Virus record (IMG/VR): IMGVR_UViG_3300029258_003221
Coordinates: 1 to 64,000 of that record
Reading direction: 5' to 3' (one strand)
Length of the DNA: 64,000 nucleotides
Under the pieces are notes generated by a model. It had not been told where the DNA came from. It did not search any database and worked only from the letters and a program-made list of their open reading frames with translations. Shown piece after piece: positions 4,979 to 54,020 of the stretch; within the stretch, counting starts at the first letter, position 1, and every line of letters starts with the position of its first letter. The translations under genes were made by a program, and so were the position numbers.

Positions 4979-5329
4979 ATGAAACCCGACACGTAGAACG
5001 TCAAACATTACAGCTATATCTTTGTCAGGGAAGACCTGACAACCTCTCAGCAGGCGGTACAATGCTGTCATGCCGCCATCAACGCCACTGCCAAATACGG
5101 TCTAGGCGATTTGCCAGACCATCCTTATCTTGTCATCTTGGCAGTCAAGAATGAATCCAAGTTGCTCCGGGTACAAAAATACCTGTCAGAGCACGGAATT
5201 CAGTTCTCTTCTTTTCACGAGTCTGATCTCGATAATGAGCTTACGGCTATTGCGACCGAGCCCATTAAAGAGCATCAACGTGCAATCTTCCGCAAGTATC
5301 AGTGCCTTAAACCAAGGGAGGCTGCGTGA
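4979..5329 (+). CDS. Pth2-like peptidyl-tRNA hydrolase with an in-frame TAG at codon 6 (4994-4996)
   Basis: AGGAG-N6-ATG; MKPDT*NVKHYSYIFVREDLTTSQQAVQCCHAAI...FHESDLDNELTAIATEP. The Pth2-type VRxDL/QxxHAA motif lies upstream of the ORF-track start 5111, and no alternative start codon lies between the TAG and the motif. Confidence 0.8.
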
Positions 5330-5511
5330 TGAGTCAAATCAAAGACCTTATCGAAGAACTAAAATCTCTTACCCGTTATGACATGGAAGTCAGAGAATAT
5401 GGTCGAACCAAATTTCGTGATTCACATGCTGAAGCACGTGAAGTGGTTTCTGGAGATGGAGACTGGGTGGAGTGGGAAGATATTGTTTATTTGATCAAGG
5501 AGTATGAATGA
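5326..5511 (+). CDS. Hypothetical protein
   Basis: ORF track; GTGA overlap with the upstream gene. Confidence 0.6.
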   Translation: MMSQIKDLIEELKSLTRYDMEVREYGRTKFRDSHAEAREVVSGDGDWVEWEDIVYLIKEYE

Positions 5512-5521
5512 GTTTGAATGT

Positions 5522-5671
5522 GGGACAGAGGTGGATTGGTTCACACAAACCAACAATTTGTTGTTGGCCTGCATGGGTTCGAGTCCTGACAGGATGCAAT
5601 GAATTGTTGGGGAGGCAGAATTGCCAGCCGTTTTCGGAACGGCCTTGCAGGTTCGATTCCTGCCTGTCCCA
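5522..5671 (+). ncRNA. Expanded tRNA-like RNA (150 nt)
   Basis: Perfect acceptor stem GGGACAG/CTGTCCC; Leu-like D-arm; perfect T-arm GCAGG-TTCGATT-CCTGC; long variable arm GCCGTT-TTCG-GAACGGC; extra hairpins where the anticodon arm should be. Confidence 0.6.
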
Positions 5672-5676
5672 CTTAT

Positions 5677-5751
5677 GGGTGCGTAGCTCAATTGGCAGAG
5701 CAGCGAGTTCTAGCCTCGTGTTTGTTGCAGGTTCGATCCCTGTCGCACCTT
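5677..5751 (+). tRNA. tRNA with anticodon CTA (amber suppressor), Trp-like body, no encoded CCA
   Basis: Cloverleaf: GGGTGCG/CGCACCT; GCTC/GAGC; GCGAG-TTCTAGC-CTCGT (CTA at 5710-5712); GCAGG-TTCGATC-CCTGT. Confidence 0.85.
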
Positions 5752-5756
5752 TTTTA

Positions 5757-5914
5757 CCGCAGGTAGCTCAGTTGGTAGAGCGTTGCTTGTGTTGAAGCTA
5801 AGACAATGGTGTACAACATTGAATTAGTGAATGCACACGTGCTGTCAAAAGTGGCCACTTTTGGCTGTCATGTAAACATAGCAGAGGTCGGAGGTTCGAG
5901 TCCTCAACTGCGGA
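5757..5914 (+). ncRNA. tRNA-like gene whose anticodon loop is replaced by a 92-nt structured segment
   Basis: CCGCAGG/ACTGCGG; GCTC-AGTTGGTA-GAGC; anticodon stem TTGCT(5783-87)/AGCAG(5880-84); AGGTC; GGAGG-TTCGAGT-CCTCA. Confidence 0.65.
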
Positions 5915-5954
5915 ATATTTTCATTTTTCCCCGGATAGAAAGGAAGAAGTTGTG

Positions 5955-6356
5955 ATGTAGAAATGGCATTGGAATCAAAAACTTGGACCTGAAAACTGTC
6001 CATACATGGTGCGATGGGTGTTTGATTTTTACTTCTTCACCATTCGTATTCATCATTGGCTTCATAGTGACGATTTGCGTCACCCCCATGATCATCCTTG
6101 GTCTTTTTGGGCCATTTGTTTGTGGGGCGGATACACAGATGTTTCACCAGATGGCGAGGACCGAGTGCGACCGGGAAGTGTACGGTTTCGCTCGGCTCTT
6201 CACCAACATTCTGTTAAAGTTGATGAAGGTGGATGTTGGACCATCCTTTTGACAGGACGTGAGCATCGTCGTTGGGGTTTTTGGGTTAATGGTAAGTTTC
6301 GTAAAAGAAACAAGTATTTCTATATGATGGGTCATCACAATCCATGTGATTCATAA
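5955..6356 (+). CDS. Cupin-like phage protein with an in-frame TAG directly after the start (5958-5960)
   Basis: AAGGAAG RBS then GTG ATG TAG AAA TGG CAT TGG, giving M*KWHWNQKLGPENCPYMVRW...HHWLHSDDLRHPHDHPW; the ORF-track start 6006 lacks an RBS. Confidence 0.7.
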
Positions 6357-6944
6357 AACTTTCAACCAGTCACTCACGAAGTTTTGATCTGGCCAACCCA
6401 ACAATGTTGAATTGTAATTAGACAGTTTTTTAAAGATTGCACATTTTTGATTTCTTTCCATGAGTTTCCAATGCTTGTCTGCCATTAAAAACCTGCATGT
6501 GTAATTAACTGCTTCAAGCAAAACATCATCAAACATCACAAATCCTCCGACTTTGATGTTCCTATGAGTGTAATACCAATCAATCATAGGAATAGGGAAT
6601 TCATGTCCTCCATCTACCAAAACAAAGTCGTATTTTCTTTTCCCCATCACTGGCAGTAATTTGTCAGATGGGCCTTGGGTGTATTTGACGTTGTCCAAAG
6701 AGATATCAATTTCTTTTGCGACATCGTCAAGCTTGTTCATGAAATCATGCTTGAACAAAGAAATTGCTTGGTGGCTTTTAGAACGTTCTGCAAAAAAGAT
6801 GGTTGTCAGCCCGGCTCCTGTTTCAAGTGAAACTCCTTTTTCTGGAGCATATTTGTCTATCATTTGATAAACAAATTCATCCATGCACCCATGAGTGTGT
6901 GGTTTGTGTCTGAAAAAGGAACTCAACGCTTCATGATAATTCAT
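6351..6944 (-). CDS. Class I SAM-dependent methyltransferase (Methyltransf_24-like)
   Basis: LETGAGLTT, FVLVDGGHEF, VGGFVMFDD motifs. Confidence 0.85.
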   Translation of the reverse strand: MNYHEALSSFFRHKPHTHGCMDEFVYQMIDKYAPEKGVSLETGAGLTTIFFAERSKSHQAISLFKHDFMNKLDDVAKEIDISLDNVKYTQGPSDKLLPVMGKRKYDFVLVDGGHEFPIPMIDWYYTHRNIKVGGFVMFDDVLLEAVNYTCRFLMADKHWKLMERNQKCAIFKKLSNYNSTLLGWPDQNFVSDWLKVL

Positions 6945-31336: not shown

Positions 31337-32443
31337 TCATATCTCCGTCGAACTGGCGGCGATGTATTCTAAATTACAACTGGCATTGAAGTCTCGGTCG
31401 TGGTGAGTTCCACATCCATCGCAATCCCATTCTCGGTCTGCCAAGGTCAAGTTTTGATTGATCTGACCGCAAATCGAACATGCTTTGCTGGATGGGAAGA
31501 AACGATCCACAGGGACGATCCTGCATCCATACCAAGTTCCTTTATATTCCAGTTGTCTTCTACACTCGAAAAATCCAATATCTGCGATTGATCGAGATAA
31601 TCTTCTGTTCTTCAACATTCCAGACACATTCAAGTCTTCAATTCCAATCGCACGCTTGGTTTTCGCTAATGCTGTTGTCATCTTGTGTAATGTATCTTTA
31701 CGAATGTTGCTGATCTTGAAGTAGAGCCGAGCAAGACGGTTCGCCGCTTTCTTTCGGTTCTGACTTCCTTTTTGTTTGCGACTCAAACTTCTGTTGAGCC
31801 GCTTGAGTTTCCTTAGTTTTTTCTTGAGCGGTTTCGGGTTCTCAAAGGTTGTCCCATCGCTCACGGTTGCCAGTGTTTTGATCCCCAAATCCATACCAAC
31901 CACATCATGTTCGTCCTTCTGGATATTGGGTTCTAACATATCTTCTTCAACTTGAATGCTGACAAACCACCTACCTGCTCTTTCACTTACAGTTGCCGAC
32001 AATATCTTGGCATCGGTTGGCAGGTATCCACTTTCTTTGAGTTTTAGTTTTCCAAGTCTCGGAAGTTGGATTGTTTTCTCTGTTACTTTGATCGTTCCCG
32101 TCAGTCGAAACCCGCCGATGCCTTTTCTCTTACTCTTGAATTTCGGGAACTTTCCTCGCTTCTTGAAGAAATTGTCAAAAGCACGATCTAGGTTTCTAAG
32201 GGCTTCCTGTGGGCTACATTTGCTGACTTCATACATCCAAGGGAATGTATCTTTCTTGAGGTCGTTGAGGCGACGGTGAAGTTCAATGGCGTTGGGAATC
32301 TTATCTTTGACTTCCATCGCTTGCTTCTTCTGGTTCATGCCCCAATTATATGTGAACCTAGCAGCACCAGCATGTTTTAGACATGCGGTTCGCTGCTTGT
32401 TGTTCAACCTCAATTCGGTCTTATAGCCCCTCTGTATCTTCAC
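31337..32443 (-). CDS. tnpB: TnpB RNA-guided nuclease
   Basis: RuvC I VGMDLGIK, RuvC II GIEDLNV, zinc finger CSICG...CDGCG, RuvC III DRDFNAS. Confidence 0.96.
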   Translation of the reverse strand: MKIQRGYKTELRLNNKQRTACLKHAGAARFTYNWGMNQKKQAMEVKDKIPNAIELHRRLNDLKKDTFPWMYEVSKCSPQEALRNLDRAFDNFFKKRGKFPKFKSKRKGIGGFRLTGTIKVTEKTIQLPRLGKLKLKESGYLPTDAKILSATVSERAGRWFVSIQVEEDMLEPNIQKDEHDVVGMDLGIKTLATVSDGTTFENPKPLKKKLRKLKRLNRSLSRKQKGSQNRKKAANRLARLYFKISNIRKDTLHKMTTALAKTKRAIGIEDLNVSGMLKNRRLSRSIADIGFFECRRQLEYKGTWYGCRIVPVDRFFPSSKACSICGQINQNLTLADREWDCDGCGTHHDRDFNASCNLEYIAASSTEI

Positions 32444-32861
32444 ACTCCTCCTCTGCTATGAACTTGCCGAAATCATGTTCATTGAACTCAGCAGTTTCAT
32501 AGACATCCCATCCAAGAACAACAGGGTCTTCGCCAACAGGCAAAGGCTGTCCATGTCCATCTAACAATGTGCCATCACGTTTTACATCAATGTGTTTAGC
32601 TCGCCAGCCATCGTACCAAAAGCCACCACGATTGAATGTGATGCAACCTTTGGGTTTGTATTCAACAACAATGTCAAATGTTGCTTCCTGCCCCATACTA
32701 ACAGGCTTGCGTTGCTTGAATTCTTTGATCTTGCAACTTTTGGGTTCTTTGCTCATCCACTCTGTTTCATTCAACTTATTCATTAGACCAAACATCAACT
32801 TTGTTGGGTCTTTCGTAACCAACTCGAACTTCAAGTAAGTTGGATTCACATTATCGGTCAT
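32421..32861 (-). CDS. Cargo hypothetical protein
   Basis: ORF track; overlaps both neighbours. Confidence 0.7.
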   Translation of the reverse strand: MTDNVNPTYLKFELVTKDPTKLMFGLMNKLNETEWMSKEPKSCKIKEFKQRKPVSMGQEATFDIVVEYKPKGCITFNRGGFWYDGWRAKHIDVKRDGTLLDGHGQPLPVGEDPVVLGWDVYETAEFNEHDFGKFIAEEECEDTEGL

Positions 32862-34849
32862 GCAACCTCCTTCAAATAATGTTCTCTCGCCGCCGCAGCT
32901 TCCTCTATGGTGTCATAAGTCCCGACACTTTGACGACCAACTCTTGCTGACCATCTCCCATTGGCTTGTTTGTAAACACCCTTATGTCCAGAGCCAGCCA
33001 ATTTTTGGCAATCGCATTTTGAGTTTGCCTTCATATTGCCGGGCAATCGTTGAAACTCTTTGCCATGCTCGCACCTGACTGTCACATACTCAAAAAATCC
33101 AGCATATTCTGACGCCAACTCCCACCCTTTATCCTCAAGAAACTGCAACAATTTTTGCTTTCCGTAATCCAAGCAGTTAGTTCTTACACAATCGCATTGG
33201 GCGTGTGGCCGCACGGCAGATCGACGCTTCATAGTGAAAACTTCACCATGTTCGCACCTAATTTGGATTTCACCCTCGCCACTATATTCAGATAGCAACT
33301 CCCACCCACGATTGGCAAAGATTTCAGTCAAGTTATCCTTACCCATCTCAGTCATTCTTTCGCCAGAGGCGATGTCGCAACAACGTGGACAACCACACTC
33401 GTTCTTGAAGTTCTGCACCAGCGTCGTCCAGACATGACCCTTATCGCACTGGATGGTCATATCTCCGTAGTATCCTTTATACTCCGAGAGACGCTTCCAG
33501 CCCCTCCGCTCCATCTCAGTGTCAATAATTTGAGTTTGGTGTTCTTTATCTTGCGGACGTTTAGATGAATAATCCCAAGAGTAGAATTTCTCTTTCTTGC
33601 AATCCATCGAAACAGACGAATCTTCGTAAAGCCAATCTCTAATTCGGAGTGCTGGCGTTCCACTGTAGCTGAACAATGACGCTGTGGAGTTCTTTAGTTC
33701 TCGATCATACTCCTCTTTGCTTCGGTCTATCACAGTATTCTTCGAGACATTGGCTTCTTCAACAATGACATCCACCACATCCTCAAGGAATTTAGGAACA
33801 GCCCCGCAAATGCTGAATGTTGGAGTTTTGTAAACCTTATGCCTGTATTTCGTAGTGCCAACGCTCACTGACCCGTCGCCATCGAAAAGTCCTCGGATGA
33901 AGTGTCTTCTCAACTCTTTAGGAATATCAGGAAAAGAAACAAGAAAGGTTTTGTTCGGAATAACGCCATGTTTCATCAAGGCTTCTACGAAACCAGTGTG
34001 ACAACATTCAAGAGTGTATTTGGTTTTCTTTCCGCCCTTATTTTTGCTGCTCACATGATATGGACCAAGAACCTTGCCTGTATATCCGATTGCATCCTTG
34101 AACTTCTCTAAATGTCTCTTCCCTTCTACAACCAACGAAATACGAAGCCGGTGTGGATTGAGTGCAACTGATCCGTCTGCATAGATGAACCCAAGCCAAT
34201 ATGCCTTTTCTTCTGTGTCTATCTCATCAAAGAAGTTGAAATCAAATGTGTATTTTCTAATCAAACCAGCAGAGCGGCGACTGCCAACTTTCAGTGTTAC
34301 TGCACGCCCGATGATGGCATTCCAAGTTCTATTGGGCAAGCCAGCTTGGATGAACTCTTGACTTTCCTTGGTGTAACTTGAGCGAAGAAAATCATCTTCC
34401 TCAGATGACCACGAAAAATCAGGCTTACTCAAGCCCAGTTTGACCGCCTTGTTCCTAATCTCGGATTCAGTCTTGTCTGAAAGCAATTCAAGCAATTCCG
34501 AATTGCTCATGGTGGCATAATTGGATTTCAACAAATCTAACTCTTTAGAAGTCCATTTCTTTCGCTTTCTGGTAAGCCCCAATCGGCAGGCTCTATCTTT
34601 GATTGCCTTGTATTTGCGGTTCGGAAGCAAATTCGACCATTGATCGGCTGCGATCTTGCCATAATACTGCCTGACAACATCATCTTCCGCCAACTGCCAT
34701 TTAGTATCTTGCGTCAAGCCAAGCCGAGATAATTTGTGTCTTATAGAAGTGTCACTCTTATCCAACTCGTTACTCAACCAATCAGTCGGTTTATCCGCAT
34801 TTTCTACAAGAAATGCCTCTTCTTTCTTAGTCCAATGCTTTCCGCTCAT
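32858..34849 (-). CDS. Multidomain LAGLIDADG endonuclease: 4 Myb-like repeats, double LAGLIDADG, 3 Zn-ribbon repeats, AP2-like domain
   Basis: WTxxE repeats; YWLGFIYADGSV and FIRGLFDGDGSV; GW.LLSEY...C..GH...C repeats; SGHKGVY...GRWSARV...GTYDTIEEAAAAR. Confidence 0.9.
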   Translation of the reverse strand: MSGKHWTKKEEAFLVENADKPTDWLSNELDKSDTSIRHKLSRLGLTQDTKWQLAEDDVVRQYYGKIAADQWSNLLPNRKYKAIKDRACRLGLTRKRKKWTSKELDLLKSNYATMSNSELLELLSDKTESEIRNKAVKLGLSKPDFSWSSEEDDFLRSSYTKESQEFIQAGLPNRTWNAIIGRAVTLKVGSRRSAGLIRKYTFDFNFFDEIDTEEKAYWLGFIYADGSVALNPHRLRISLVVEGKRHLEKFKDAIGYTGKVLGPYHVSSKNKGGKKTKYTLECCHTGFVEALMKHGVIPNKTFLVSFPDIPKELRRHFIRGLFDGDGSVSVGTTKYRHKVYKTPTFSICGAVPKFLEDVVDVIVEEANVSKNTVIDRSKEEYDRELKNSTASLFSYSGTPALRIRDWLYEDSSVSMDCKKEKFYSWDYSSKRPQDKEHQTQIIDTEMERRGWKRLSEYKGYYGDMTIQCDKGHVWTTLVQNFKNECGCPRCCDIASGERMTEMGKDNLTEIFANRGWELLSEYSGEGEIQIRCEHGEVFTMKRRSAVRPHAQCDCVRTNCLDYGKQKLLQFLEDKGWELASEYAGFFEYVTVRCEHGKEFQRLPGNMKANSKCDCQKLAGSGHKGVYKQANGRWSARVGRQSVGTYDTIEEAAAAREHYLKEVA

Positions 34850-38765: not shown

Positions 38766-40205
38766 TTAGATGATGAAATTCGCCACGCTCATGCGGGCAT
38801 AGAACTTCGATCCTTCCCTTAACAACTTTTTTCCATACCGAGTCAAGATTCCCTTACGAGGGCAGAAGCTCTCAGGATCAAGCACTACGGGTGTTTGTGT
38901 CAGTGGCACGTAGGGACAGTAGAAATATCCCGAGTCCATGTAAGAATCACCTTTGTATCCCATGAGGATTTGACCTTGTGGGAACAGAGGGTCTTTGTAG
39001 AGACGCCATCTGTTGTTGATCGTACCAACATACTGAATACCAAGACTTGAAGTGAAGGTTTCAGAAGGTGCAGGTGCGAAACCAGCAGTAGCAGTTTCGA
39101 AGATAGAAGCAACTTCAGGGCTTGTGACAAGCCAGTTACATCCGCCTCTGAGCGTCTTACGGTGAACGACGTTAGAGACTTCGACAACCTTGATGTACAG
39201 GGCTTCGTACTTCTCTTTGATAGTGTCACCGAGTGCTGTATTGAAGTCCCAAACAGCGACAGTACCGGCGTTGTTACGCAGGTCAGTCAGAACCTCACGG
39301 TCGATCTCAAGATTGATTTCCTGAGCGAGGACAGCAGTCAATTCTGCCTCTGCATCAAGGTTGTGCTGAGATCGGAGGTCTTGCTGAGCTTCATAAGACC
39401 AGACAGCTTTGAGCTTACGGGTCTTAGCAGCAATTTCTTCAGATTCGACAACCAGATTAACTTCTGGGAGGTCTTGGTTGCATTCCATGTTGTATTCGTA
39501 AGAAACAACAGCGTGGTTTTCACCGGGATCACCGTCCCAAGTGAAGGTCATTTCGCCCGTGGTCAGGTCAATCGATCCGCTTGTAACAGCAGGAGAAGGA
39601 GCAGATCCAACGTTGGAGAAAGTGAAGGTTCCAGCTTCAGACACAACAAATGTCTGGATAGCGGTTGATCCATCATAGATGGTACCAGTGAGAGTACCAG
39701 CAAGGATAGGAGTGTGCTCAAGAGCACCGAAGGTGGAGGTTGTATCGCCACCGGCATCCGTTGTGGTAGTTTCATTCTGCACGAACTGATGCGTGTAGTA
39801 GATTTCCAAGTTTCCATCACCGGAAGCCAACTGCTGGAGTGATGTGCTGTCATCCGATGGGAATCCAGCGTTCAGATCAGCACCTCTCATGGCACCTTTG
39901 TTGCTGGAGTAGCGGAATCGCAGGTAGTACACCAAACCAGTTGGGCCGAGCAATGGTTGCACGGAAACAACTTTGTTTGCGATCAGTTGTGGGTAAATTC
40001 TTCGCACAAGCGGAATAGAAATTCGCTTGAACTGAGCGATGTCACCTGTGTCGGTCATGGTCTCATTGATGAGACGCTGGTTTTCCAGAAGCACAGCGGC
40101 TGTGGAACGTTCAAACCGATCAGAAATGCCATCCAGCATCTGAGTTCGACCCCATTTGGCTTCGATCTTAGCTGCTTCGTTTAGATATTGAGCATTTGCA
40201 TTCAT
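38766..40205 (-). CDS. gp23: Major capsid protein, T4 gp23-like
   Basis: IPLVRRIYP...VQPLLGPTGL...RKLKAVWSYEAQQDL...EINLEIDRE...GYFYCPYVPL...KGILTRYG. Confidence 0.97.
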   Translation of the reverse strand: MNANAQYLNEAAKIEAKWGRTQMLDGISDRFERSTAAVLLENQRLINETMTDTGDIAQFKRISIPLVRRIYPQLIANKVVSVQPLLGPTGLVYYLRFRYSSNKGAMRGADLNAGFPSDDSTSLQQLASGDGNLEIYYTHQFVQNETTTTDAGGDTTSTFGALEHTPILAGTLTGTIYDGSTAIQTFVVSEAGTFTFSNVGSAPSPAVTSGSIDLTTGEMTFTWDGDPGENHAVVSYEYNMECNQDLPEVNLVVESEEIAAKTRKLKAVWSYEAQQDLRSQHNLDAEAELTAVLAQEINLEIDREVLTDLRNNAGTVAVWDFNTALGDTIKEKYEALYIKVVEVSNVVHRKTLRGGCNWLVTSPEVASIFETATAGFAPAPSETFTSSLGIQYVGTINNRWRLYKDPLFPQGQILMGYKGDSYMDSGYFYCPYVPLTQTPVVLDPESFCPRKGILTRYGKKLLREGSKFYARMSVANFII

Positions 40206-52217: not shown

Positions 52218-54020
52218 TTACCAGCCGAATTCTTTTAACAATTTGTTGTGTTTTCTTTTGAAATGACTAGGCACAGCAAACTCATCTTTATCAATCGCAT
52301 TCATATTTAAATCTTCTTCTTCAAACCAATTGTCTGGAGCATCTTTAGTCAATTCAGCTTTGATATCTTCATAGATTTTGATTTTGAATGCTTCTTTTTC
52401 TTCTTCAGGAACATCATAACCAACAGGTACAAATCGGGCACGAGCATCACGTGCGTGCAAAGCCAGACACATTGCCATAATAGCATCATCATGGTGACCT
52501 TTTTCAGCTTCAGCTCGTTTGGTTTGTTTGTTGTAAACGAATGTTCCCAGTTCTTTAACGAATCTTCGACTACGAATTGCCATGCTTTTGTTGATCAAAC
52601 GTGTGTGTAGTGTTTCAAGATACAATGGTCTGTTGCTTCTTGTTGTTTTAACGCCTGCTTGTTCTTTTTTACCCTGCACAGTGTGAAAAATGTTTCCGTA
52701 ATGAAAATCGTGCTGTAGTTTATTGAGAACCGTTAATCCGCAACTTTGACTTTCAACAACAATGCATGCATCATTGTAGGTATGTCCAACCATGGCGAGG
52801 ATTTGAGCAAATGAATGCGGAGGGCAAGTATTACTGTAAAACTCTGCAACTTGTTCACATGTGCTTTGGTCTATGACTTGAAAACAAGTATTGTCTGCCT
52901 CTTCGCCTTGTCCTTCGGCAGGGTCTACACCGATGATATACTCTCTGCCATCAACAGGTTCTTTCCACACATGAAGAGCACCACGTTCCCACAAATCTTC
53001 GTCTTCAACTTTAAGTTCACGAGCTTCTGCACTATTGTTCCATTCCGGGAATAACATTCTCAAAGGTTCGATGTCTTTAATTTTTGCACGAAGTTCTTCA
53101 ATGATGTGTGGCGGAATGTAAGAATCACCAGCACCAAGAAAGTCACGAAGCACTTCCTGTTTCCAGCCTTTTTCACCAAGCTGAGCTTTTGTTTGTTTAA
53201 CCCATTTTTCATCGTGGTAATCGGGGTGTTCCCAATAGTCCAAGTCGATGATGTGAAAAAAGTTATCACCTTTTTCTGCATTGTGATATGTTTCTTCATA
53301 CCAGTTGCCTACACCGTTAACCGTAGAAATTGCGATACATCGACCACCAGTTGAAATAGTCGGATACATAGCTTTCCAAAACTTTTCCATGTTTGGAATA
53401 AACGCTGCTTCGTCAAGAATCAAATATGTAATAGCACGACCACGGGCAGCTTCTGGTGTATAGAAGAACAGTTTGCAGCCTGTATCGGAGAAAATCTTTT
53501 GGTGGTCGTTATTTTTGTCCATTTGAGGAGTCATCCAAGATGGAAGTTCCTCTAAGGCTCTTTTAGCGACTTCACCAGCAGCAATAGCTTCACGGTCAGA
53601 TTTAGATAAGACCATCATAGTCTCATCGAGCTTGAATAAACTTCTCCATAAACACCAGTTTACGGTCACGGTTGTCAATCCACCTTGCCTAAACTTAGAA
53701 ATTATGTTAAATCTGTAATCAGCGTATTCTTCAATTACCCTTCTTTGGTAATTGTACAGTACAAATGGAAGTAAACCGTGAATAGGATGAGTAATCTTAA
53801 CGTACTTGTGAGAAAAGTATGGAAATGACAAAGCACATTTGTACATCTCCAATTCTTGCTTCTCTACGCTGTAATTCTCAATATCTTCGATGGTTTCCAT
53901 TGGATCAATTTCCAATTCAAACTTATCGAATTTGTAATATTCACTGTCATATGTGGCATCATAGTACTCTTTCAATGAAGCGTATTTGCCACGCCAATTT
54001 GTATCAACAATGTAAGACAT
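52218..54020 (-). CDS. gp17: Terminase large subunit, T4 gp17-like
   Basis: SKFRQGGLTT (adenine/Walker A region), LILDEAAF (Walker B), ISTVNG, IGVDPAEG, HDDAIMA; start refined. Confidence 0.96.
   Translation of the reverse strand: MSYIVDTNWRGKYASLKEYYDATYDSEYYKFDKFELEIDPMETIEDIENYSVEKQELEMYKCALSFPYFSHKYVKITHPIHGLLPFVLYNYQRRVIEEYADYRFNIISKFRQGGLTTVTVNWCLWRSLFKLDETMMVLSKSDREAIAAGEVAKRALEELPSWMTPQMDKNNDHQKIFSDTGCKLFFYTPEAARGRAITYLILDEAAFIPNMEKFWKAMYPTISTGGRCIAISTVNGVGNWYEETYHNAEKGDNFFHIIDLDYWEHPDYHDEKWVKQTKAQLGEKGWKQEVLRDFLGAGDSYIPPHIIEELRAKIKDIEPLRMLFPEWNNSAEARELKVEDEDLWERGALHVWKEPVDGREYIIGVDPAEGQGEEADNTCFQVIDQSTCEQVAEFYSNTCPPHSFAQILAMVGHTYNDACIVVESQSCGLTVLNKLQHDFHYGNIFHTVQGKKEQAGVKTTRSNRPLYLETLHTRLINKSMAIRSRRFVKELGTFVYNKQTKRAEAEKGHHDDAIMAMCLALHARDARARFVPVGYDVPEEEKEAFKIKIYEDIKAELTKDAPDNWFEEEDLNMNAIDKDEFAVPSHFKRKHNKLLKEFGW

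Follow-up and report, generated by a model that had tools for sequence, protein, structure and literature searches.

Introns of bacterial tRNA genes are thought to be removed only by self-splicing, and group I introns (Rfam RF00028), usually of at least about 200 nt with a conserved catalytic core (P3–P9), interrupt the anticodon loops of both bacterial and phage tRNA genes. In archaea and eukaryotes, short structured tRNA introns are removed by proteins, with the splice sites marked in the archaeal type by two 3-nt bulges separated by a 4-bp helix and with EndA and RtcB acting as endonuclease and ligase. Inserts of another kind have been noted once in phage tRNA genes, as the "enigmatic", non-classifiable introns of Lak megaphages, one of which was itself predicted to look like a tRNA, and were left unexplained (Devoto et al. 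2019, PMC6784885); literature searches found no follow-up of that report and nothing on the Caulobacter phages. Stable RNAs that keep tRNA features without decoding are represented by tmRNA, which has a tRNA-like domain lacking an anticodon arm plus a tag reading frame, and by the 139-nt species 1 RNA (rnaC), which has a T arm, in the T4 tRNA cluster. Valine-accepting tRNA-like structures of tymoviruses and the tRNA-linked small RNAs of murine gammaherpesvirus 68 likewise use a tRNA shape for charging or processing and not for decoding.

The gene described here lies in a 64,000-nt stretch (the window) that forms the first 64 kb of a 234,631-bp IMG/VR virus record (IMGVR_UViG_3300029258_003221), rated 44% complete by CheckV. 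The major head protein, portal and large terminase are recognizable, and the head protein has 385 relatives in viral contigs, some on records of 459–533 kb, indicating that the record is a fragment of a very large phage. A tmRNA-like gene and a group I intron in tRNA-Leu(UAA) elsewhere in the record point to a bacterial host. The same DNA was found in seawater and sediment DNA metagenomes from six studies, and among the public runs searched it was present only as DNA and in no RNA run.

The observation of a tRNA-shaped gene whose anticodon loop holds a 92-nt structured insert, made from the sequence alone, is confirmed. The Rfam tRNA model (RF00005) matched the gene from end to end (model positions 1–71) at 33.4 bits, above the curated cut-off of 29, with 91 unaligned bases within the anticodon loop and with intact acceptor, D, anticodon-stem and T helices, apart from G-A mismatches at 7:66 and 49:65 (Table 1). 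However, the 7-nt loop with U33 and a purine at 37 of canonical decoding tRNAs is absent, as 92 nt lie between the strands of the stem, the last seven being UAAACAU (A33) and the first two UG, so that U33 is supplied by neither side. The hairpins named in the sequence-only reading are present, and its 16-nt palindrome at 5847–5862 is right but is part of a perfect 18-nt palindrome. Such an 18-nt palindrome is expected about 0.24 times in 64 kb and is only mildly unusual. The fold of the arm plus insert is not clearly better than that of shuffled sequences (z -1.77, with 10 of 200 shuffles as good), while z is -2.42 for the whole gene, and the strength of the finding therefore lies in the tRNA frame and in the relatives and not in the stability of the insert. 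No Rfam family matched the insert at E values up to 10.

Table 1. Coordinates of the tRNA-like gene, its neighbors and other features discussed in the text.
Sequence	Position	Strand	Feature	Basis
Window	5111–5329	+	Small ORF directly upstream of the cluster; a homolog sits in the same place in locus L107	phrog_34073 (E 1.8e-14) and, weakly, a "hydrolase" phrog; no Pfam hit
Window	5522–5671	+	Second tRNA-like gene (150 nt), 9-bp perfect acceptor helix, about 78 extra nt between the D arm and the anticodon hairpin	Rfam 29.4 bits; fold z -4.52
Window	5576–5588	+	T-arm-like element GGTTCGAGTCCTG within the extra part of 5522–5671	Repeat analysis
Window	5627–5643	+	Canonical anticodon hairpin of 5522–5671 (GCCGU-UUUCGGA-ACGGC, anticodon UCG), right before its T arm	Infernal alignment; fold
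Window	5677–5751	+	Ordinary amber-suppressor tRNA (anticodon CUA), companion gene of the cluster	ARAGORN; Rfam 52.2 bits
Window	5757–5914	+	tRNA-like gene with anticodon-loop insert (158 nt)	Infernal/Rfam
Window	5757–5763	+	Acceptor stem, 5' strand (CCGCAGG); C1 pairs with G72	Infernal alignment; same 7-mer in locus L114
Window	5766–5781	+	D arm (GCTC-AGTTGGTA-GAGC)	Infernal alignment; last stretch homologous to L114 before the break
Window	5783–5787	+	Anticodon stem, 5' strand (TTGCT)	Pairs with 5880–5884
Window	5788–5879	+	Insert (92 nt), including the single-stranded tail	Direct reading
Window	5788–5872	+	Lineage-specific part of the insert	Minimum-free-energy folds; repeats
Window	5789–5836	+	Hairpin A, with inner hairpin 5797–5828 and loop GUGUACAA	Minimum-free-energy folds
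Window	5837–5873	+	Hairpin B	Minimum-free-energy folds
Window	5846–5863	+	Perfect 18-nt palindrome (CAAAAGTGG/CCACTTTTG) in hairpin B	Repeat analysis
Window	5873–5879	+	Tail UAAACAU, corresponding to loop positions 32–38 (A33, A34-A35-C36-A37-U38)	Last six or seven bases unpaired in the folds
Window	5880–5884	+	Anticodon stem, 3' strand (AGCAG)	Infernal alignment
Window	5885–5914	+	Variable loop AGGTC, T arm (GGAGG-TTCGAGT-CCTCA, 5890–5906), acceptor 3' strand ACTGCGG, discriminator A73 (5914)	Infernal alignment; 87% identical to L114 1927–1957
Window	6006–6356	+	116-aa small cupin gene (predicted metal-binding), starting 92 nt downstream of the tRNA-like gene	phrog_4786 (E 3e-30); AlphaFold2 pLDDT 90
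Window	6351–6944	-	Methyltransferase gene	
Window	31337–32443	-	TnpB-like transposase	phrog_506 (E 5.5e-116)
Window	32858–34849	-	663-aa protein combining endonuclease, D5-like and HNH endonuclease matches	
Window	38766–40205	-	Major head protein	
Record	121538–121851 (locus L002 1539–1852)		tRNA-Leu(UAA) with a 240-nt group I intron	Rfam Intron_gpI 40.6 bits, E 5.6e-8, below the gathering score of 50
Record	134421–134560 (locus L003 921–1061)	-	Miniature tmRNA-like gene of about 140 nt	Rfam tmRNA 53.7 bits against a cut-off of 47, with 78 nt where the model expects 308; ARAGORN proposes a tag peptide
Record	146976–147089	-	tRNA-like element with no D arm	
Record	211218–211284	-	Second amber-suppressor tRNA (loop UUCUAAA, anticodon CUA), 67 nt with a shortened D arm	
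CcrColossus (NC_019406)	241461–241733; 241749–241994		Two family members (273 and 246 nt), unannotated	
Bajun (ON529858)	53586–53856		Family member (271 nt), unannotated	
GD virus 1 (MW805361)	113999–114122		Family member (124 nt), unannotated	Rfam tRNA, 41 bits
GD virus 1 (MW805361)	112272–113695 (locus L164 399–1822)		Genes annotated as RNA ligase (gp191) and phosphatase (gp192), immediately upstream of the family member and the cupin gene	Annotation
Genome G004 (532 kb)	L088 4872–4971, 6212–6337, 14780–14905; L089 14759–14889; L104 872–995		Five tRNA-like genes sharing a motif of about 45 nt	No Rfam match
Cupin loci	L131 2037–2111, 2187–2261; L119 2161–2235; L120 1685–1761; L121 1603–1679		Further odd tRNA-shaped genes	

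The sequence-only reading also held that both neighbors of the suppressor tRNA lack a decoding loop, which is wrong for the gene at 5522–5671. This gene has a canonical anticodon hairpin next to its T arm and, with a T-arm-like copy in its extra part, looks like a tRNA nested in a tRNA. The small ORF upstream of the cluster has a C-terminal motif (ELTAIATEP...FRKYQ) reminiscent of PTH2-type peptidyl-tRNA hydrolases. Together with the gene at 211218–211284, the suppressor tRNA makes two CUA tRNAs in 234 kb, although a test for stop-codon recoding by open-frame coverage did not decide either way, and the in-frame stops seen in two cupin homologs are TGA and TAA in thin contigs and not amber. The TnpB-like transposase and the adjacent 663-aa protein are probably mobile elements inside the structural gene region.

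Direct searches did not reveal copies of the insert. Exact-pattern scans of viral contigs with the 18-nt palindrome, and with the exon pair separated by a gap of 75–105 nt, found nothing outside the window's own record, and blastn against GenBank phages gave only a generic tRNA hit. When the cluster DNA was sought in 20 large relatives chosen by capsid similarity, only D-arm 20-mers matched. A covariance model of the whole gene, run over 47 related records, found only ordinary tRNAs (an Asn-GUU tRNA at 51.5 bits and a Phe-like tRNA at 35.1 bits), indicating that the tRNA body alone does not fix the identity. In contigs built from public reads, joints that skip the insert come from tRNAs of unrelated organisms matching only the 20-nt sides and are not insert-free alleles. 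ARAGORN called the gene a tRNA-Asn(GUU) with an 83-nt intron at 37/38, but this reading is rejected because it needs a shifted stem with a U-U mismatch and G37, whereas the relatives point to the 3' tail as the conserved half of the loop.

Relatives were recovered through the gene just downstream, whose predicted structure resembles small metal-binding cupins of the TM1459 type; the fold gave only generic small metal cupins, with no link to RNA. Homologs of this cupin were retrieved with their flanks from viral contigs (loci L107–L112), metagenome contigs (loci L113–L160) and GenBank phages. In about two thirds of the 57 loci (37 by our tally, which includes near-duplicate contigs and L113, which equals the window), a tRNA-shaped gene of the same unusual kind lies within a few hundred bases of the cupin gene on the same strand. 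Three of these loci are in cultured phages, Caulobacter phage CcrColossus, Brevundimonas phage Bajun and Paraglaciecola Antarctic GD virus 1, in whose GenBank records standard annotation has missed the genes completely. A CUA tRNA accompanies the family in L107, L114, L115, L120–L122, L135, L136, L156 and L158. The neighboring methyltransferase gene gave no relatives in viral contigs and is not homologous to the methyltransferase that precedes the cupin gene in CcrColossus, and no three-gene module exists. The tRNA clusters next to cupin homologs in L131, L119, L120 and L121 contain further odd tRNA-shaped genes, in some of which the anticodon stem is 7 bp and capped by a 4-nt loop (GCAA, GUUG), leaving truly no anticodon, while others have 8-nt loops.

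Of the 26 members examined, 22 begin with C, which pairs with G72, and nearly all have A73. When the anticodon stem was placed purely by canonical geometry (2 nt after the D stem and 5–6 nt before the T stem), 13 of 16 long members formed a full 5-bp stem, each with a different sequence, with 75 of 80 cells paired against 32–46 of 80 when the 3' strand was slid by 2–3 nt, indicating that the stem is kept by compensatory change around the insert. The insert, of 1–207 nt across the family and 39–207 nt in members with a long insert, always begins directly after nt 31, usually starts with a helix within 0–3 nt of the stem and ends 5–8 nt before the 3' strand. Members with loops of 7 nt (GAAACAU, AAUACAU), 8 nt and 9 nt also occur at the same genomic position. 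The single-stranded tail is N-A-C-A-U or N-A-C-A-A in most members, but in a few it is a complete canonical loop (UUGACAA in GD virus 1, UUAACAU in L108, AUGAAGA in CcrColossus). U33 is present in only about a third of members, and A33 is the commonest base, including in the insert-free members. The window's gene has all of the features that define this cupin-linked family, namely C1-G72, A73, the covarying 5-bp anticodon stem, the insert directly after nt 31, the single-stranded N-A-C-A-U/A tail and the small cupin gene within about 700 nt on the same strand.

The inserts fall into several unrelated sequence groups. L107, L114 and L115 (subfamily alpha) share a core with a conserved 14-nt apical loop on covarying stems, in which RNAalifold found compensatory changes in 11 of 33 predicted pairs; L108 and GD virus 1 share another insert, and L154 and L138 a third. 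The window's insert resembles none of them (best z 2.3), has no homolog outside its own population and is not itself supported by covariation. L114, whose cupin is 84% identical at the protein level, showed by blastn 76–87% nucleotide identity to the window up to 5781 and again from 5884, with the exons 87% and the flanking genes 76–78% identical, but no homology at all across 5782–5883, which is exactly the anticodon arm plus insert. The arm with its insert has therefore been exchanged as a unit on a conserved scaffold. Within the window's own population, a contig from run X6 that is 1.6% diverged over 4 kb showed no change in 5757–5914 in a partial comparison, which is not fully certain and carries limited weight. 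In the related megaphage G004, the motif of about 45 nt shared by five tRNA-like genes lies in or beside the anticodon arm, contains ATTTGTCC-TTCG-GGAATG ... GGGATTACAT and has a covarying flanking helix (CCAA/TTGG, CGAC/GTTG, CTTC/GAAG), but it is not detectably related to the window's insert. The same genome has tRNA-Lys(CUU) and tRNA-Thr(AGU) genes whose 21-nt and 36-nt inserts could be removed to leave perfect loops.

The interpretation drawn from the sequence alone, an anticodon-less tRNA mimic or a spliced tRNA, is supported in part, as a non-decoding RNA and a spliced tRNA remain the two leading explanations and are not separated by the present evidence. It was right that the insert is too short for a group I intron and has no bulge-helix-bulge. 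"Anticodon-less" is not accurate, however, because the 3' half of a valine-type anticodon loop sits directly before the 3' strand of the stem, both here and in relatives. The condition named beforehand as refuting it, that relatives have a normal tRNA and that the insert is a one-off inactivation, does not apply, since relatives carry inserts at the same position and the 7:66 G-A mismatch is shared with L114 and is a family trait and not decay.

The gene belongs to a conserved, so far unannotated family of phage tRNA-like genes derived from valine-type (in some lineages phenylalanine-type) tRNAs. In the tentatively preferred reading, to which a probability of only about 0.4 is given, the RNA would be transcribed together with the neighboring suppressor tRNA, cut out by RNase P and RNase Z because its tRNA frame is intact, and would keep its insert, resulting in a stable, tRNA-scaffolded RNA that does not decode on the ribosome. 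It would present the N-A-C-A-U strand and A73 together with a variable hairpin module. A35, C36 and A73, which are conserved besides the scaffold and present here, are the main identity elements for valyl-tRNA synthetase in E. coli, while CcrColossus and Bajun carry G34-A35-A36 with A73, the phenylalanine set. The anatomy, the family, the fixed insertion point, the covarying stem, the cassette swap and the linkage to the cupin gene are established by the sequence analysis, whereas transcription, processing, retention of the insert, binding or charging by valyl-tRNA synthetase and any downstream role such as decoy or regulator are inferred, and no function for a non-decoding RNA of this kind has been demonstrated.

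Retention of the insert is favored because U33, nearly universal in decoding tRNAs, is missing here and in most members on either side of the insert, and because the 1–2 extra nucleotides on the same side of the 8–9-nt loops of relatives cannot be introns, so that the family tolerates extra nucleotides at this site in the mature RNA and does not keep a decoding loop. The conserved apical loop of subfamily alpha, far from the junction, fits a working RNA domain and not a spacer and is not expected of a protein-spliced intron. However, it is also possible, and only slightly less likely, that the insert is a true intervening sequence, cut out by an unidentified protein endonuclease that recognizes the helix/6–7-nt bulge/helix junction, with the halves rejoined by a phage or host RNA ligase to give a valine-type tRNA (anticodon AAC) with the loop UAAACAU; in this view different intron families have invaded the same site and the flanking exon sequence was co-converted. 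The fixed position with variable length and sequence, the insert-free alleles on the same scaffold (CAGCGGG acceptor in L139 and L158 against L132), the perfect canonical loops that GD virus 1, L108, L123, L141 and CcrColossus would regain on exact excision and the replacement of the flanking stem, as in intron homing, all agree with splicing. The RNA ligase and phosphatase genes of GD virus 1 may be an RNA repair or splicing toolkit, Rnl1- and Rnl2-type ligases occur in the clade's near-complete genomes, and the group I intron in tRNA-Leu(UAA) shows that interrupted tRNA genes are tolerated in this phage. Against splicing, no group I core was found, EndA (PF01974) and RtcB (PF01139) were absent from this record and from the clade's genomes G003, G004, G005 and G007 in searches that found the control genomes but covered phage genomes only among the candidates, and no RNA ligase was found in the 234 kb of this incomplete genome. 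The spliced product here and in most members would have A33 or C33 instead of U33.

A dead tRNA gene, disrupted by palindromic junk or a remnant of a small mobile element and carried along with the working suppressor tRNA, is unlikely. The two G-A mismatches, the lack of a canonical loop, the chance-level fold, the lineage-specific insert and the palindrome-rich region would fit decay, but the same architecture recurs at the same genomic position over cupin identities from 28% to 84% and in cultured phages, the anticodon stem is kept by compensatory change, the exons are more conserved than the flanking genes, and no change was seen in the partial comparison with the diverged strain variant. 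A role at the DNA level, with the palindromes as binding sites for a dimeric repressor, recombinase or nuclease or as a transcription stop inside a tRNA gene, is very unlikely. The 18-nt palindrome is accompanied by TGTACA and CACGTG, and relatives keep palindromic 8-mers that change symmetrically (GTGATCAC in L107 and L114, GAGATCTC in L115), but a terminator scan found nothing in the insert, palindromes are what RNA hairpins look like in DNA, and neither the conserved tRNA frame nor the single-stranded tail would be explained. More broadly, though doubtfully, phages of several lineages, including culturable Caulobacter, Brevundimonas and Paraglaciecola phages, may share a tRNA scaffold with an exchangeable anticodon-arm cassette that represents either a new kind of tRNA intervening sequence at 31/32, removed by a route that is neither group I nor EndA-based and perhaps uses phage RNA ligase, or a new class of tRNA-scaffolded functional RNAs presenting a synthetase-readable strand plus a variable module, possibly in an arms race with host tRNA-targeting defenses. 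Either a new splicing route in a bacterial system or a new class of stable phage RNAs would be of interest.

Among the described systems, group I introns share with this gene the interruption of a tRNA anticodon loop in a bacterial system, but the insert is only 92 nt and no RF00028 match was found at E values up to 10 in 5300–6100 or in the 180–207-nt inserts of CcrColossus and Bajun, although the model does find the tRNA-Leu intron of this genome. Group I introns have a U at the end of the 5' exon paired to G in P1 and a G as the last intron base; here the exon end GCUU pairs with AAGC of the insert through U-A and not U-G, with no U-G wobble at a P1-like helix, and a G precedes UAAACAU, without other support. 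Protein-spliced archaeal and eukaryal introns are likewise short structured inserts of free length and sequence whose ends are brought together at the base of a helix next to the anticodon stem, but here no 3-nt bulges flank a 4-bp helix, the folds giving helix/(0–3 nt against 5–8 nt)/helix, and the site is 31/32 and not 37/38. tmRNA and T4 rnaC keep acceptor and T-arm features, so that tRNA processing enzymes handle them, while carrying a large non-tRNA body, whereas the window's RNA would keep a full D arm and anticodon stem, has no tag reading frame or tmRNA call by ARAGORN or Rfam, and shows no sequence similarity to rnaC, itself without a described function, or to rnaD. The tymoviral and gammaherpesviral RNAs come from different viruses and hosts and have no homology, and the Rfam Tymo_tRNA-like model gave only a weak, chance-level hit elsewhere. 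The Lak megaphage genes are closest, being tRNA-shaped genes of a very large phage with an anticodon-region insert that no RNA family explains, that is conserved between samples and for which no splicing mechanism is known, and the tRNA-like Lak insert recalls that of the neighbor at 5522–5671. The Lak inserts were placed by a eukaryote-mode predictor and by alignment with insert-free alleles and were treated as introns of decoding tRNAs, whereas here the site is 31/32, U33 is mostly absent, the arm plus insert is swapped as a cassette and the gene is linked to a cupin gene, and the phage clade, GC content and habitat also differ. Genes of this general kind were reported once, as a single oddity, and the present finding extends that report with a defined family, a fixed 31/32 site, cassette exchange of the anticodon arm and experimentally tractable members in phages that can be grown in the laboratory.
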